DNA of 9,616 nucleotides, taken from positions 1-9,616 of the IMG/VR virus record IMGVR_UViG_3300005964_000002. One strand, given 5' to 3'. The notes under the pieces were generated by a model that made no database searches, was not told the origin of the DNA, and was given only the letters and a program-made list of their open reading frames with translations. Made by a program: the position numbers and the translations under genes. How positions within the stretch are numbered: position 1 is the first letter of the stretch; each line of letters opens with the position of its first letter. This document shows positions 88-9,616 of this stretch, piece by piece.

Positions 88-1470
88 ATGTTTGCAGTAA
101 CTAATATAACATTTTCATTCCCCTGTCAGTCAGTTTATCAAATTGCTAATTTATTATCTTCTCCAACTAAATATTCATTAATTTCATCTTCCTTATGGAA
201 CGAAATAGTAAACGATTTATACTTAACTTACAGTGTTTTTAAATATATTAACTATTTATCTCAATATCCATATCCAGAATATATACAGCCCGCAATTGAT
301 GAATTTCTTAATTTTCCTTATCAATTTACGCCTTATCCATTTACGTCTCTATTGATTGCACAAAAAGGAATTCCTCTCACTGCAAATGATTTTAATAAAC
401 TTATTGATGCAATTGTAGAATTAGCTAACGAATTTGATATTCAACTAAAAACACAACTAAGTCACGTTCAACATGATCAAATTGTCAAATCTTCACAATT
501 TTCAAATGTAATTTATGCAATAAATCAATTATTAACTTTCGACTATAATACTTACTTTCTTTTAAGTTGCTCAGGTTATGAATTCAGAAACTTACTAAAT
601 ACACAAAATACATTTTTGAATGTGTTAATTGGAATTTTAAATACAGCAATAACTATATCACATAACACTTATGTTAAAAATTTACTTATATACAATTCGA
701 AATATTCTATATCTATTTATGGATCTATCGGCACAATAGCAATGGAAATAGACAATGGTGGAATATATTTACATAATTAAAGTTCAATTGAAAGAATTAA
801 TATAAATCAAGAAGAAATAGGAATTTATTTGAACAATAATCCTTATGTTAATTCTATTAATATAGGAACTGATAATGGAGGAATGTATTTATATAATTAC
901 GGTTCAGTTGAAACAATTAATATAAATCAAGAACAAATAGGAATTTTTTTGCATAATAATTTTTATGTTAATTCTATTAATATAGAAACTGATAATGGTG
1001 GAATATATTTACATGATTACAGTTCAGTTGAAAGAATTAATATAAATCAAGAACAAATAGGAATTTATTTGCATAATAATTCTTATGCTAATTCTATTAA
1101 TATAGGAACTGATAATGGCGGAGTACATTTACATGATTACGGTTCAGCTGAAACAATTAATATAAATCAAGAAAATAATGGAATTTATTTGGACGATAAT
1201 TCTTATGCTAATTCTATTAATATAGGAACTGATAATGGCGGAATATATTTAGATATTTATGGATCAGCCAATATAATCACTATACAAACCGAAAATGCCG
1301 GTGTGTATTTAAATGACAACAATTATGTAAAGACTCTATATATAGAAAATAATGTTGGAGGAATATATTTATATAATAATGCGATAATAGAAAATTTAAT
1401 TTGTAAACAAAATTCTGGAGGAGTATATGTTTTTGGAAATGCGAAAATCATAAATAATCAGTGTGCCTAA
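88..1470 (+). pseudogene. Rudiviral minor structural protein (SIRV2 ORF564-like) with C-terminal beta-solenoid repeats; 460-codon frame interrupted by a single in-frame TAA at 778-780
   Basis: ORFs 88-780 and 829-1470 share a frame, and 781-828 is open (SSIERININQEEIGIY). The TAA sits where later repeat copies have TAC/TAT (898-900, 1018-1020, 1138-1140, 1258-1260). Position upstream of the convergent 158-aa methyltransferase matches SIRV synteny. Confidence 0.75.
751..1260 (+). repeat. Coding tandem repeat: 120-bp (40-aa) unit of two 60-bp subunits; 4 full copies (781, 901, 1021, 1141), a partial copy at 751-780, and degenerate copies to about 1440
   Basis: Directly visible: 'attaatataaatcaagaa' and 'attctattaatatagRaactgataatgg' recur every 120 nt. 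Protein unit is xSxExININQExxGIxLxxN-xYxNSINIxTDNGGxxLxxY. Confidence 0.97.
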
Positions 1471-6453: not shown

Positions 6454-7356
6454 ATGAAATTAATATTTGGATTAAGTTCAAGATCAACTTATCTATTAAA
6501 AACTAATTTTCCAGTTTTAATTAATCAATTGAAATTTAGAAAAAAAGAATGGAAAAATGAGACATGGGTAGATAGTGGAGGCTATCAAATTCTATTACAC
6601 GGTTTAGAAATTTCTGTAAAAGATGTCCTGAAGAAGTACAAAAAGATAGATGCATATGCGTTTTTTTCTCTCGATATTGCTAGCGTTTTTTCTCCTTTGG
6701 ACAAACGAAATTTTGAATATTTTGAATATTTGTACACAAAAATAGAATGGTTAGAAAAAATTATACCAGTGATACATATTTATCCAATTCAAGATATAGA
6801 TGAGGCAATTGATTTTTATAAACAATATACTTATTATTTTTCAATTGGTGGACTTGTGGCATCTAGCAAAATGAAAGTTTTAATTTATACATTTCCATGG
6901 GTTTATTACTTAAGAAAAAAAGTTCCATATCTTCACGTTCTCGGAATGCCGGCACCGTATTTTCTTCAGACGTTCAATTTTGCTAATAGCATGGACACAG
7001 CAACTTACAGTAAAATAACCGGATTTAGAGATATATTTTGGTTTGATGGATCTAGAAGATATGTCGGAAATATGGAAACGAGAAGAAAAAGATGTAAAAT
7101 CACAAAAGAAGAAAAAGAACAATTGTTTGAATTCCTAGATAAACATAATTTTCCTTTTGAATATGACTTGAGCAATAGAAAAATTATAGAACTTATAAAT
7201 GCTTACATTTTATTCTATAATAATTGGAGAATAAAGAATAAATATACAGAATATGCAGAAAAACTTAGAAAAATGGGGCTAGATAATTTAGTAAATGAGT
7301 TAATTAGGAACTATAAATTTGCAAGTCAAATATTAAAACAAAAAAGAGAAAAATAG
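6454..7356 (+). CDS. tRNA-guanine transglycosylase-family protein (TGT/DpdA-like)
   Basis: TGT motifs WVDSGGYQ, FSLDI, IIPVIH, FSIGGLV, LHVLG and NSMDT. Starts 2 nt after the transporter stop. No obvious CxCxxC zinc motif or PUA tRNA-binding extension. Confidence 0.88.
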   Translation: MKLIFGLSSRSTYLLKTNFPVLINQLKFRKKEWKNETWVDSGGYQILLHGLEISVKDVLKKYKKIDAYAFFSLDIASVFSPLDKRNFEYFEYLYTKIEWLEKIIPVIHIYPIQDIDEAIDFYKQYTYYFSIGGLVASSKMKVLIYTFPWVYYLRKKVPYLHVLGMPAPYFLQTFNFANSMDTATYSKITGFRDIFWFDGSRRYVGNMETRRKRCKITKEEKEQLFEFLDKHNFPFEYDLSNRKIIELINAYILFYNNWRIKNKYTEYAEKLRKMGLDNLVNELIRNYKFASQILKQKREK

Positions 7357-7474
7357 ACGATAAAAAATACAATAGTCAATAATTTGTACCAATTTTTAAC
7401 GATTAAAAATCTTAATTCAAATAAGTTATCCACTTTTTGTCACCGAAATAATGAAAAATATAAACTTATAAAAG

Positions 7475-7494
7475 AAAAATTAAAAAGTCAAAAA
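7475..7494 (+). promoter_or_regulatory. GTC-type promoter of the DndC-like gene
   Basis: AAAAATTAAAAAGTCAAAAA; GTC (7487-7489) is followed by 20 nt and then the ATG at 7510. Confidence 0.6.
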
Positions 7495-7509
7495 TAAACC
7501 ATATTTCAT

Positions 7510-8724
7510 ATGTCTCTTAGATTGTCTGAAGATCCCAAAGTTCATGAAACATTCAATGTATTCGATAGCCTGAAGGACAGGAAAAACTATGTCATAGCGT
7601 TTTCAGGCGGAAAAGACTCAACAACACTTTCTATTCTTTTCTATGAATGGTTAATTTCCAGGAATCAGAAGGGAAAGCATGTGTTCTTTGTTCACAATGA
7701 CACCGAGTCGGAATATGATGTTCTAGAGGATTATGCAATCAATTTCCTTCATGAGATCTGTGAAAAGATCAATGAATCGGGTAATCTATGTATAAATTAC
7801 ATTACGAAACCTAAAGGAAACTTTTACTGGAAATCTATATTTTTGGGATATGTAGCACCCACAACTAGTTTCCGCTGGTGTATTTATGACCTGAAGGTCT
7901 CACCAAATAAAAGAAGTTTAAAAAATTTAATTAAAAAATATGGTGACTTAGTACTATTCACAGGTCATAGAGAAAATGAATCGATAGCAAGAAAAGTGAC
8001 AATGAAAAAGTATTCATGTGGATTAGATTCTATGGATTGTGCAAGTGCTTTTTATCTCAATGTCTCAATGAAAAATGTAATTAAAGTGGCACCAATAAGA
8101 AAATGGGATCTTGAAGACGTTTGGAAATATTTAAGATCAAAAAGGGGAGAATTCAACATAGATACATTATTTGATGTAATGTATAAGAATACTAGTTCTA
8201 GATGGGGATGTTGGCATTGCACTCTAGTAAAAGTACAGAAAAGTGTATATAACTTAGACGAAAAATATTTTCCTCTGGAGGCTTTAAGAATACTTTACAG
8301 AACAATATCAGATCTCGAAAGATTCAGATTACGAAAAGATTGGGGATACTCGAAACTAGGCGCCCTATCGCCAAAGGGAAGAGCAATACTCATGTATGGA
8401 ACAAAAGTTATAGAAAATATAGGAATAAAATTGTATGGATTAGACTTCAAATTAGAGGGAACCCATAGCTTAAGAGAAATCATGTTTGAGCTAGATGAGG
8501 ACATAGCAGACAGGGAAGTCATGACCATAGCTAAGGAATTGAAGTCAAAGACTAGTCGTATCATTCCGATAGGTGTGCTTAGAGGACAAAGAATGACCAA
8601 AACGGATGAAGAAGTGATACTTCACATGGCGGAAAGCAATGTTTCCCTTAACGTTTTAAAAATTCATTCTACAAAGGATCATTTCAAGGATCTTGTCCAC
8701 AATATTAGAAATGAGATGAGTTAA
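7510..8724 (+). CDS. dndC: DndC/TdpC-like DNA phosphorothioation sulfurtransferase (PAPS-reductase / PP-loop adenylyltransferase fold, probable Fe-S)
   Basis: PP-loop AFSGGKDST; NDTESE; DndC-typical FYWKSIFLGYVAPTTSFRWCIYDLKVSP; TGHRENESIAR; APIRKWDLEDVWKYL; SRWGCWHCTLV; C-terminal LGALSPKGR. Confidence 0.8.
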   Translation: MSLRLSEDPKVHETFNVFDSLKDRKNYVIAFSGGKDSTTLSILFYEWLISRNQKGKHVFFVHNDTESEYDVLEDYAINFLHEICEKINESGNLCINYITKPKGNFYWKSIFLGYVAPTTSFRWCIYDLKVSPNKRSLKNLIKKYGDLVLFTGHRENESIARKVTMKKYSCGLDSMDCASAFYLNVSMKNVIKVAPIRKWDLEDVWKYLRSKRGEFNIDTLFDVMYKNTSSRWGCWHCTLVKVQKSVYNLDEKYFPLEALRILYRTISDLERFRLRKDWGYSKLGALSPKGRAILMYGTKVIENIGIKLYGLDFKLEGTHSLREIMFELDEDIADREVMTIAKELKSKTSRIIPIGVLRGQRMTKTDEEVILHMAESNVSLNVLKIHSTKDHFKDLVHNIRNEMS

Positions 8725-8730
8725 AAAAGA

Positions 8731-8988
8731 TTAGCTTGTTTTCTTATATTGCTCTATAAAATTGGCTAACCTTTTAAGAAAAACCTCAAAATTATAACTT
8801 ATATAGGGATATTTACTTGCACTTTGTAAATCCTTGTAAAAATCCTCTATATCCTCTTCTTTTAAAACCTTTGAATATGATAAAAGGTAATTAAGATAAA
8901 ACTCATCAGCACCGGTTGTTGGATGAAGATTGTATAATTCTGTTACAATTTCGTTTTTTAACTCCTTAAAGTCCTTCTTAAAATTCAT
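8731..8988 (-). CDS. Small helical hypothetical protein, 85 aa (start revised to MNFKK...)
   Basis: Shine-Dalgarno GGTGAT 6 nt upstream of the ATG at 8988; starts 2 nt after the stop of the upstream HTH gene. Confidence 0.8.
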   Translation of the reverse strand: MNFKKDFKELKNEIVTELYNLHPTTGADEFYLNYLLSYSKVLKEEDIEDFYKDLQSASKYPYISYNFEVFLKRLANFIEQYKKTS

Positions 8989-8990
8989 TT

Positions 8991-9164
8991 TTAAATCACC
9001 CAGCAATCTTCCATCATTTTCTTTACTTTTCTTTCCGAAATATTTAAAAAATTGGCTATTTGTTGAACTGTGTAGCCCTTTCGGGCTAACTCATGAGCTA
9101 TGCTTATTAAATCGACTTCATCTTGCACGTAATATTTTACGCCTTCAACTTGGACGACTCTCAT
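8991..9164 (-). CDS. 57-aa HTH DNA-binding protein, homolog of SIRV1 ORF56a / SIRV2 gp1
   Basis: Manual translation MRVVQVEGVKYYVQDEVDLISIAHELARKGYTVQQIANFLNISERKVKKMMEDCWVI*. Classic HTH (GYTVQQIANFLNISERKV), closely resembling my recollection of SIRV gp1. Not in the ORF track. Confidence 0.9.
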   Translation of the reverse strand: MRVVQVEGVKYYVQDEVDLISIAHELARKGYTVQQIANFLNISERKVKKMMEDCWVI

Positions 9165-9199
9165 TTCTGTATCACTATCATTTATCTTGTAGTCAGCCC

Positions 9200-9213
9200 T
9201 TAATAAAGTTTTC
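9200..9213 (-). promoter_or_regulatory. BRE/TATA promoter candidate for the HTH gene
   Basis: Minus strand reads GAAAACTTTATTAA, 35 nt upstream of the ATG at 9164; canonical archaeal type without GTC. Confidence 0.5.
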
Positions 9214-9263
9214 TCTATCTTTTTACCTTTATAGCTTACGCCGTTTTTCTTATAAAAATATAT

Positions 9264-9425
9264 TTAATCTTTATATTTCTTTTTTAACATTCTAATTAAT
9301 TCTTCTTCTTCAATCCGTTTCATTTCCTGTCTTAATTCCAATAAGAAAAAGAGAAATAATAACTCATAAAAAAATCCAACAATAACTATAAGCCATGTTG
9401 GATCTAGTGATGCATTTAAATCCAT
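9264..9425 (-). CDS. 53-aa single-pass membrane protein with charged C-terminal helix
   Basis: Manual translation MDLNASLDPTWLIVIVGFFYELLFLFFLLELRQEMKRIEEEELIRMLKKKYKD*; Shine-Dalgarno GAGGT upstream. Not in the ORF track. Confidence 0.75.
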   Translation of the reverse strand: MDLNASLDPTWLIVIVGFFYELLFLFFLLELRQEMKRIEEEELIRMLKKKYKD

Positions 9426-9440
9426 ATTTTCATACCTCAG

Positions 9441-9616
9441 TTATACTTTTTCATTAATAATTTTATCTAACTTATGATTGAATTTTGCTTTTATCTCATC
9501 AGGACTCAGCAATTGATAGACTTCATCACTGAGAAGTTCAGATATTATATCTATGTTTTTTTCTTCTAAATTTTCAAAAATACACTCGTCCAGATATCGA
9601 TCTTCATTAAGTATAT
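9441..9616 (-). CDS. C-terminal part of an acidic hypothetical protein (starts outside the window)
   Basis: Open frame ...ILNEDRYLDECIFENLEEKNIDIISELLSDEVYQLLSPDEIKAKFNHKLDKIINEKV* ends in TAA at 9443-9441, just before the next gene's Shine-Dalgarno. Confidence 0.7.
   Translation of the reverse strand, partial: ILNEDRYLDECIFENLEEKNIDIISELLSDEVYQLLSPDEIKAKFNHKLDKIINEKV

Follow-up and report, generated by a model that had tools for sequence, protein, structure and literature searches.

The virus record analyzed here (IMG/VR record IMGVR_UViG_3300005964_000002; 9,616 bases, with an estimated completeness of ~30%), which we refer to as the window over its whole length, carries at positions 7510 to 8724 a gene for a DndC-like protein of 404 amino acids. 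We are highly confident that this gene was acquired by the virus and that it is functional. It lies in a variable spot of a rudivirus genome, has solitary relatives on other mobile elements, and bears a start region of the type found at rudiviral genes. A preliminary description, made from the letters of the sequence, had proposed that the gene looks horizontally acquired and derived from a host, that it is wired to a viral promoter, and that it works. Below we consider how far each part of that proposal stands and what the protein may do for the virus.

Acquisition of the DndC-like gene

The window is a fragment of a usarudivirus, a rod-shaped archaeal virus of hot springs, with ~81% DNA identity to SIRV8, SIRV10, and SIRV4; its proteins were read in the standard genetic code, and no alternative code was needed. 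In a megablast search, the Yellowstone usarudiviruses SIRV8, 10, 9, 4, and 11 cover 54-61% of the window at 80-82% identity. The matched block holds a methyltransferase, a glycosyltransferase, an amino-acid-permease-like gene, and, as its final gene, a tRNA-guanine-transglycosylase (TGT)-like gene, which forms the left border of the variable spot. All SIRV matches stop at 7350-7394, right behind the TGT stop codon at 7356, and a more sensitive search of 7300-9616 found that similarity returns only from ~9000, among small terminal genes. The part in between, from 7358 to ~9000, has no counterpart in isolated rudiviruses and contains the DndC-like open reading frame (ORF) together with a convergent ORF of 91 amino acids. 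SIRV10 provides the empty site, in that its inward-facing terminal genes begin 14 nucleotides (nt) after the TGT-like gene, while different genes occupy this spot in SIRV8 and SIRV4. Contigs from two hot-spring DNA runs (X1 and X2) that match the TGT-like gene continue into unlike sequence at 7354 and 7367. By tblastn, none of the archaeal viruses in the phage collection, rudiviruses included, encodes a homologue of the protein. The suggestion that the gene sits at the junction between the core block and the inward-facing terminal genes is thus borne out: the window is no longer collinear with the SIRVs beyond 7357-7394 and becomes so again at ~9000, and every ORF beyond 8724 lies on the minus strand. 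The features of this region are as follows.

6454-7356, plus strand: TGT-like gene, 300 amino acids, matching phrog_887 (queuine tRNA-ribosyltransferase) at E = 2e-65
7357-7468, plus strand: A/T-rich spacer, defined by sequence and base composition, and not common to the second rudiviral context described below
7469-7509, plus strand: promoter-like part of the cassette, with an A/T box at 7475-7486, GTC at 7487-7489, 20 nt, and the ATG at 7510
7510-8724, plus strand: DndC-like PP-loop ATP-pyrophosphatase of the phosphoadenosine phosphosulfate (PAPS)-reductase fold, 404 amino acids
8731-9006, minus strand: orf91, the convergent neighbor of the DndC-like gene, also missing from isolated SIRVs

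The nearest relatives recovered by a metagenome search, 76-96% identical, are solitary genes on other mobile elements. A sister virus (L012, 92% nucleotide identity) and a further contig (L108) have the same layout as the window. A second rudiviral arrangement, on contigs L109 and L110 (84% amino acid identity), places the gene between different terminal genes, and its homology to the window comprises exactly 7469-8724, that is, the promoter plus the ORF. Four further settings hold solitary copies that are 76-81% identical: a pRN-type plasmid-like contig with a primase-helicase (L003, copy 76% identical), a contig related to the bicaudaviruses SMV3/4 and YNP1 (L006, also L111), and two unclassified elements (L007 and L009), one of which, L009, has a B116-like gene. 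The flanks of these last two gave no nucleotide match in the phage collection. We read the 1.26-kb unit 7469-8724 as an accessory cassette, made up of a promoter and one ORF, that a usarudivirus lineage most likely gained from the pool of Sulfolobales mobile elements and that now sits in the variable spot behind the conserved TGT-like gene.

Two of these elements have contents of their own that deserve mention. On L007 (978-4283), two ribbon-helix-helix genes precede the DndC-like gene, which faces a gene for a type II methyltransferase-like protein of 523 amino acids, so that two modification-type genes stand side by side. Besides its pRN1-type primase-helicase, L003 (1-13482) encodes MoxR/VWA proteins, a KwaA-like protein, and a MazE-like antitoxin; a gene for a ThyX thymidylate synthase immediately precedes the DndC-like gene there.

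The ancestry of the copies was examined in a maximum likelihood tree. All mobile-element copies form one clade (100% SH-aLRT), whose sister group is a cellular clade of Sulfolobales. The copies of rudiviruses, which are low in guanine plus cytosine (GC), are a subclade (99%) nested among GC-rich mobile-element copies. On these sequences, the most economical history is a single capture of the family from cells by a mobile element, followed by its passage from element to element and its entry into rudiviruses from a GC-richer one; once there, the gene would have shed a large part of its GC, though not the whole. Because the rudiviral copies are nested in the mobile-element clade and cellular proteins are only 36-47% identical, the direct donor to the rudiviruses was most likely another mobile element. 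The label "host-derived" therefore applies indirectly and at a distance; the nearest relatives reside in viruses and plasmids, with the rudiviral copies nested among them.

Base composition points the same way. The ORF has a GC content of 34.5% (39.0, 32.3, and 32.1% at first, second, and third codon positions [GC1, GC2, and GC3]), and the nine genes upstream in the window range from 24.0 to 29.7%, with a GC3 of 11.7-22.4%. GC3 of the DndC-like ORF (32.1%) exceeds the pooled value for those nine genes (18.4%; Fisher p = 2e-9), and since the excess is greatest at third positions, it is not an effect of amino acid content. The small downstream ORFs orf91, orf57, and orf53 have GC3 fractions of 0.20-0.36. 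The GC-richest of all 1215-nt windows begins at 7506, which corresponds to the DndC-like ORF, and the spacer that separates it from the TGT-like gene (7357-7509) has just 19% GC. Divided into 60-nt lines, the DndC-like gene averages 34.6% GC (28-45%) and the TGT-like gene 27.1% (17-45%; Mann-Whitney p = 0.0013); against all other lines, the difference has p = 1e-6. Full computation by sliding window and GC3 thus upholds the compositional contrast that had been estimated by hand. The estimate of ~35% for the DndC-like gene was accurate, while the 23% given for the TGT-like gene was too low (27.1%), which narrows the gap from 12 to ~7.5 points. In codon usage, the gene is the most deviant of ten (distance 1.14; others 0.75-1.08), but not by a wide margin, and we take this as weak support for transfer.

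It is scarcely conceivable that there is no transfer signal and that the GC offset stems from amino acid content or chance. GC1 and GC2 of the gene do fall within or near the range of other genes; the GC3 contrast (32 versus 18%, p = 2e-9), the empty site, the absence of the gene from isolated relatives, and its nesting in the tree all speak to the contrary. We reject this explanation on those four grounds, and the support for horizontal acquisition comes more from comparison than from composition: the gene is absent from the rudiviruses of the collection, its empty site exists in SIRV10, and it is found in at least five unrelated mobile-element contexts.

How the composition came about is less straightforward. 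The gene is GC-richer than its flanks in every mobile-element context, with gene/flank pairs of 52.7/46.7, 54.5/48.6, 49.3/38.2, 48.8/34.7, and 45.2/32.0%, and of 33.5-34.5/25-28% in rudiviruses. At synonymous sites with G or C throughout the GC-rich copies, the rudiviral copies have A or T in 50-56% of cases, and the reverse holds for 8-19%. Yet two points weigh against a simple history of decay. The excess in all contexts might partly reflect a bias intrinsic to the gene rather than a fading signal of transfer. In addition, when synonymous changes between the window and L012 are polarized with L109 as outgroup, 24 run from A/T to G/C and 15 from G/C to A/T; with GC-rich outgroups, 20 run from G/C to A/T and 6 from A/T to G/C, homoplasy clouding the direction. 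With all three outgroups in agreement, the count is 8 to 3.

Promoter, selection, and neighboring genes

Our results agree with the proposal that the gene is wired to a viral promoter. An A/T box, AAAAATTAAAAA, lies at 7475-7486, directly before the GTC. The same arrangement, a GTC behind an A/T-rich stretch and 19 nt before the ATG, occurs at orf309 (3017, minus strand), orf201 (3149), and the permease (5261). The preliminary description had counted four other starts in the window with matching spacing; these three core starts hold, while the fourth, that of the methyltransferase, is a looser case in which GTC stands 25 nt before the ATG without an A/T box. A GTC at -22/-23 is found at 4 of 13 starts, whereas over the whole window 3.1% of ATGs have one (binomial p = 5e-4). 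These four starts all lack a Shine-Dalgarno-like GGTG, a motif that the operon-internal genes do have. The promoter part (7469-7509) is identical in L012 and L108, and in L109 and L110 the A/T box, the GTC, and the 20-nt spacing are kept at 83% overall identity. Upstream sequences of the non-rudiviral copies differ from each other and have no GTC at that position.

Such an arrangement fits leaderless first-gene mRNAs, as would be expected from what is known of Sulfolobales. Because the GTC stands 19-20 nt before the ATG and GGTG is lacking, the mRNA of the DndC-like gene is predicted to be leaderless or nearly so. An A/T box with GTC also precedes many terminal genes of SIRV4, 8, and 10, and with its box directly before the GTC and conserved among related viruses, the DndC-like gene fits the rudiviral class of TATA-plus-GTC promoters. 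Promoters of SIRV1 and SIRV2 have been described, in the account available through a later citation, as having the trinucleotide GTC behind their TATA box (Kessler et al. 2004, as cited in PMC5569661). Insofar as that account goes, the DndC-like gene and the three core genes resemble them in having an A/T box directly before the GTC. They differ from many SIRV terminal genes, in which the GTC lies 30-38 nt from the ATG and the leader is of the GGTG type, compared with 19-20 nt here. Taken together, the box, the GTC, and the 20-nt spacing in both rudiviral contexts, their absence from non-rudiviral copies, and the likeness to the SIRV1/2 motif as so described make it likely that a rudivirus-type promoter is in use at this gene. 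Farther upstream, a second TTTTTGTC at 7434-7441, 70 nt before the ATG, is conserved in L012 and L108; with its T-tract at 7434-7438, it could be the terminator of the TGT operon or a second box-plus-GTC element.

Patterns of substitution indicate that the gene is maintained. The ratio of nonsynonymous to synonymous substitution rates (dN/dS) relative to L012 is 0.089, and for orf201, the glycosyltransferase, orf139, the permease, and the TGT-like gene it is 0.085-0.19. Judged from these alignments, purifying selection on the DndC-like gene appears as strong as on core virus genes. This result, along with invariant catalytic motifs, sustains the view that the gene is functional. In two metatranscriptome runs, contigs match the gene over 7899-8144 and 7971-8144 at 97% identity. 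They fit expression of the gene but are no proof of it, as these runs consist of contigs, with no starts, ends, strand, or levels, and RNA libraries may contain DNA.

Probable traces of host immunity were also seen in RNA libraries:

7742-7779, strand not applicable: stretch matching a host CRISPR spacer with 1 mismatch in 38, found in short contigs of the metatranscriptome runs X23 and X24

In those contigs, the stretch has the same 25-nt repeat-like sequence on both sides. It is identical in L012 and L108 and has 3-6 mismatches in other alleles. It is one of three stretches of 36-40 nt (with 6788-6827 and 6840-6875) that recur with 1-2 mismatches in short contigs of two hot-spring metatranscriptome runs, flanked by the CRISPR-repeat-like sequences GTTTCATCCTCAAAGGAATTGAAAG and, for one spacer, GCTAATCTACTATAGAATTGAAAG. 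The three resemble transcribed spacers with which a host would target the TGT-like and DndC-like genes.

Among the neighbors, the TGT-like protein has no Pfam or NCBIfam match at E ≤ 0.01 and is therefore a divergent member of its family. The convergent orf91 has no match in family libraries and none by tblastn in the phage collection. It is present in L012 (70% amino acid identity, dN/dS 0.33) and in L108, and is not beside the gene in L109 and L110; it is not part of the DndC cassette. Contigs of both DNA runs contain a 12-nt insertion, TTGGCTAACCTT, at 8761 (in orf91, minus strand), which duplicates adjoining sequence and is an in-frame length polymorphism of the population. Elsewhere in the window (88-1470), two ORFs in the same frame (230 and 213 amino acids) are split by a single in-frame stop at 778-780. 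The sister virus L012 has a tyrosine there and one unbroken ORF of 440 amino acids. The encoded protein is made of ~35-amino-acid repeats (NSINIGTDNGG...ININQE), and either nonsense mutation or faulty assembly accounts for the stop.

The protein and its relatives in cells

The following motifs of the protein are conserved among 50 homologues.

7603-7620, plus strand: PP-loop SGGKDS, residues 32-37; S32, G33, G34, K35, and S37 are invariant, whereas D36 occurs in 90% or more
7876-7881, plus strand: W123-C124 of an FRWC motif, invariant, aligned to FRWC of bona fide DndC
8200-8220, plus strand: R231-W-G-C234-W-H-C237; R231, G233, C234, W235, and C237 are invariant, aligned to RFGCWTC of DndC

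The cysteines of the last motif are likely, by analogy, to bind an iron-sulfur (Fe-S) cluster or to act in catalysis; the Fe-S role is proposed because it is known for DndC. The protein exceeds the threshold of Pfam PF01507 (PAPS_reduct) with 53.8 versus 22.5 bits, residues 27-238 covering profile positions 2-173 of 175. The DndC model TIGR03183 gives 121.7 bits versus a cut-off of 290.4 and takes in only residues 22-249 (profile positions 11-257 of 447), while the DndC model of PADLOC matches at E = 1.6e-37. With a profile of the 50 homologues (hhalign probability 99.9), DndC of a Salmonella dndBCDE cluster is 29% identical over residues 22-248. The SGGKDS, FRWC, and R(F/W)GCWxCT motifs align with it, and the cysteine-rich insert that DndC has before GCWxC is missing. 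A profile scan of genome contigs with the family alignment returned, among the matches listed, only bacterial DndC. Models of the CysH type fared poorly (TIGR00434, TIGR02055, and TIGR02057 at 30.1, 19.7, and 19.7 bits versus cut-offs of 165.1, 235.3, and 254.2). Pfam and NCBIfam scans gave no match to the QueC family, and the match to QueC in the Protein Data Bank (PDB) by family profile had E = 0.4.

The AlphaFold2 model of the protein has a mean predicted local distance difference test score (pLDDT) of 91.5. Its solved relatives, found with Foldseek over the N-terminal 220 residues, are adenosine phosphosulfate (APS)/PAPS reductases (top, probability 1.00) and Fe-S tRNA thiolases; we know of no solved DndC structure. 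Predicted models of DndC clusters superpose on residues 1-350 (up to 339-350) at template modeling (TM) scores of 0.68-0.71. Sequence alignments with DndC end at residue 249, and the C-terminal 155 residues do not align. Folded alone, this part reaches a pLDDT of 93.6; it has no Foldseek match at E ≤ 0.001, and its best VIA-align Z of 4.9 is within noise for helical domains. A PDB sequence search with the single protein gave no match, and one with the family profile gave only PP-loop stretches. No dndD, dndE, dndA/iscS, or dndB was found in the window, in the mobile-element loci, or in the eight cellular loci considered below. The term "DndC-like" is accordingly a fair description of the core motifs and fold, while membership in DndC fails (121.7 versus 290.4 bits, with no DndD or DndE partners). 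From its sequence, we class the protein as DndC-like in its core and place it outside DndC proper.

In cells, the closest proteins share 36-47% identity with the viral one, and the family is rare there: 7 of 351 species genomes of the class have it at E ≤ 1e-20, four of them strongly. We compared eight loci of the cellular clade, from Stygiolobus caldivivus, Saccharolobus shibatae (locus L013), three other genomes, and three contigs of metagenomes. Each of the eight has the gene directly next to a superfamily 1 (SF1) helicase (AAA_11/AAA_12, ~520-540 amino acids) and a nuclease-like protein of 620-690 amino acids. The linkage of this triad holds in convergent and divergent layouts, down to ~30% identity between loci. 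Pfam PDDEXK_1 matches the nuclease-like neighbor weakly in 6 of 8 loci and not in L115; in L105-L107, this neighbor was detected by tblastn only. Half of the loci add a second, short PAPS-reductase-fold gene and three genes with no assigned family. Integrase, transposase, DUF1156 methylase-like, and PIN genes lie nearby.

Laid out along the crenarchaeal loci (L004 8494-19379, L016 7654-17891, and L115 263-10493; also L013, L014, and L105-L107), the cluster consists of an unknown protein (464-474 amino acids), the DndC-like protein, the SF1 helicase, the PD-(D/E)XK protein, a short SspD-like PAPS reductase (260 amino acids), and two unknown proteins (~590 and ~360 amino acids). Its minimal form is the DndC-like gene, helicase, and nuclease. 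Scans with PADLOC, Pfam, and NCBIfam returned nothing usable for the unknown neighbors (464-474, 585-595, and 349-365 amino acids). Helicase and nuclease match Mokosh, Druantia, and Cas4 models only weakly, and PADLOC models do not match the cluster as a system. We found no paper describing the triad cluster in the searchable literature, though absence there is no proof of novelty. In the window and in five other mobile-element contexts, the DndC-like gene stands alone, without helicase and nuclease.

Possible function and comparison with known systems

What might a solitary DndC-like enzyme do for a virus? We lean toward an enzyme that modifies nucleic acid. During infection, host RNA polymerase would most likely transcribe the gene as a leaderless mRNA, because it has a rudivirus-type A/T box and GTC at the spacing of core genes. 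The enzyme would then use ATP and Fe-S-bound sulfur to place a sulfur-type (phosphorothioate-like) mark on nucleic acid, with the PP-loop serving ATP-dependent adenylation and the three invariant cysteines retained. The most probable substrate would be viral DNA. In this way, the orphan enzyme could copy the self-mark of a host system composed of a DndC-like protein, a PD-(D/E)XK nuclease, and an SF1 helicase, and the marked viral genome could escape the host nuclease. Taken as a whole, from the acquired cassette to this escape, the explanation seems to us about as likely as not. We favor an orphan modification enzyme because the family is tied to a nuclease in cells and is solitary on viruses and plasmids, like orphan methyltransferases that escape restriction. 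That it acts in counter-defence against the cellular triad specifically is a tentative proposal, one we consider possible rather than probable. It is somewhat more doubtful still that the cluster is an undescribed modification-dependent defence system of Sulfolobales and Thermoproteales, and that the solitary copies are its stolen modification half, used as shared counter-defence.

Several considerations weigh against these proposals. Bona fide DndC requires DndA/IscS, DndD, and DndE, and these are absent from the window and from beside every homologue. The cellular helicase and nuclease might be nicking or ATPase partners of a modification complex instead of a restriction module, in which case a solitary viral enzyme could not act alone. 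Furthermore, the mobile-element clade sits on a long stem branch (0.67) and is 36-47% identical to cellular proteins, and for this reason its specificity or function may have changed.

The partners bear directly on an alternative that we consider unlikely, namely, that the viral protein modifies no DNA by itself and instead joins the host helicase-nuclease pair, which it redirects or saturates, or blocks that system as a decoy. The cellular homologue is always linked to a helicase and a PD-(D/E)XK protein, perhaps in one complex like SspB/C/D, and known DndC and SspD do not act alone. However, all catalytic motifs are invariant in the solitary copies, and a mere decoy needs none of them. An improbable reading turns from DNA to RNA: thiolation of RNA or tRNA in the manner of TtuA or NcsA, tuning translation or RNA stability at high temperature. 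Three invariant cysteines with a PP-loop do resemble the [4Fe-4S]-dependent tRNA thiolases, TtuA and NcsA are among the fold and profile matches, and the adjoining gene is TGT-like. Against this, DndC profiles score 122-129 bits and any tRNA-thiolase or TilS model at most 25, the whole-chain structural matches are DndC clusters, and the cellular relatives occur with nuclease and helicase in defence-island-like settings. Those same settings, and the occurrence of the family on plasmids and viruses, could suggest cargo that harms competitors, such as a defence or superinfection-exclusion gene against other elements; the plasmid-like contig also has KwaA- and MoxR/VWA-type genes. We give this idea as little credence as RNA thiolation, as the gene travels on mobile elements without nuclease or other effector, and a modification enzyme alone excludes nothing.

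Two metabolic roles seem very improbable. The gene lies next to the TGT-like gene on the same strand, and QueC, also a PP-loop enzyme, is among the weak fold matches, so the protein might replace a QueC-like enzyme and partner the TGT-like gene in a 7-deazaguanine pathway of the queuosine or archaeosine type. Yet the TGT-like gene is conserved in SIRV4/8/9/10/11 without a DndC-like gene, the latter occurs in five other contexts without TGT (including the second rudiviral position), a 153-nt spacer with its own promoter-like site parts the two genes, and the QueC match is marginal (E = 0.4). A functional link to the TGT-like gene was rejected, the linkage being seen only in the virus lineage of the window. 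Similarly, the name of the Pfam domain, PAPS_reduct, and the best solved structural matches might call to mind an auxiliary metabolic gene, an assimilatory APS/PAPS reductase that boosts sulfur assimilation by the host. This would be difficult to reconcile with scores of 20-30 bits for cysH/APS/PAPS models versus cut-offs of 165-254, with an extra C-terminal part of 150 amino acids that DndC-like models appear to share, and with cellular neighbors that are a nuclease and a helicase rather than sulfate-assimilation genes.

Our findings have implications beyond this one virus. Rudiviruses serve as models among archaeal viruses, and the known archaeal anti-CRISPRs are found among the accessory genes of their genome ends; for archaea, to our knowledge, very few means of countering defences other than CRISPR have been described. 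With this cassette, an enzyme carried by a virus can be matched to one particular candidate system of the host, and the pairing is testable with Sulfolobus/Saccharolobus genetics. If the solitary copies are indeed a stolen modification half, archaeal viruses would have their first case of escape through an orphan modification of the sulfur type, and if the chemistry is phosphorothioation, that modification of the DNA backbone would extend to hyperthermophilic viruses. The gene also illustrates, cleanly and in nature, how a promoter is fitted to its carrier: upstream of one and the same ORF, each type of element has its own sequence, with the A/T box and GTC only in rudiviruses, and this contrast among copies could be used to probe the role of the GTC element. 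The crenarchaeal mobile-element clade, the rudivirus-fitted promoter, and the cellular sister group linked to nuclease and helicase appear to be unrecorded in the collections and papers that we searched.

Among known systems, the closest is DndC, the PP-loop/[4Fe-4S] sulfurtransferase of DndABCDE phosphorothioation (TIGR03183). The two share the SGGKDS, FRWC, and R(F/W)GCWxCT motifs and 29% identity over residues 22-248, and their predicted structures would superpose over residues 1-350 (TM 0.68-0.71). In contrast to DndC, the viral protein has no cysteine-rich insert before GCWxC, its C-terminal 155 residues cannot be aligned, it is 404 amino acids long rather than 450-540, and no DndB/D/E or cysteine desulfurase gene is near any locus seen. 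SspD of SspABCD single-strand phosphorothioation and BrxP of type 4 BREX are likewise defence proteins of the PAPS-reductase fold; their PADLOC matches (34.5 and 46.8 bits) are much weaker than that to DndC, and their partner genes are absent here.

Phage-borne DndC- and PAPS-reductase-like genes are already known and are suspected to be anti-defence genes. The stand-alone genes of bacteriophages (PHROG 424, 12882, and 2302), with examples in Mu-like Pseudomonas phages and Rhizobium phage RR1-A, resemble the present one in being solitary, virus borne, and of the same fold, and stand-alone phage PAPS reductases cluster in variable regions rich in anti-defence genes (PMC13551039). They differ in that identity is 24-31% and in that the gene described here falls in a crenarchaeal clade that has a cellular sister group and partner genes of its own. 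Orphan phage DNA methyltransferases offer a functional analogy only, as fold and chemistry are unlike. Still, both would be modification genes without a restriction partner in an accessory region, with cellular relatives beside a nuclease, and on L007 the DndC-like gene even adjoins a gene for a type II methyltransferase-like protein. Copies on viruses and plasmids are solitary, whereas in 8 of 8 loci of the cellular clade the DndC-like gene is joined by its PD-(D/E)XK and SF1 helicase partners.

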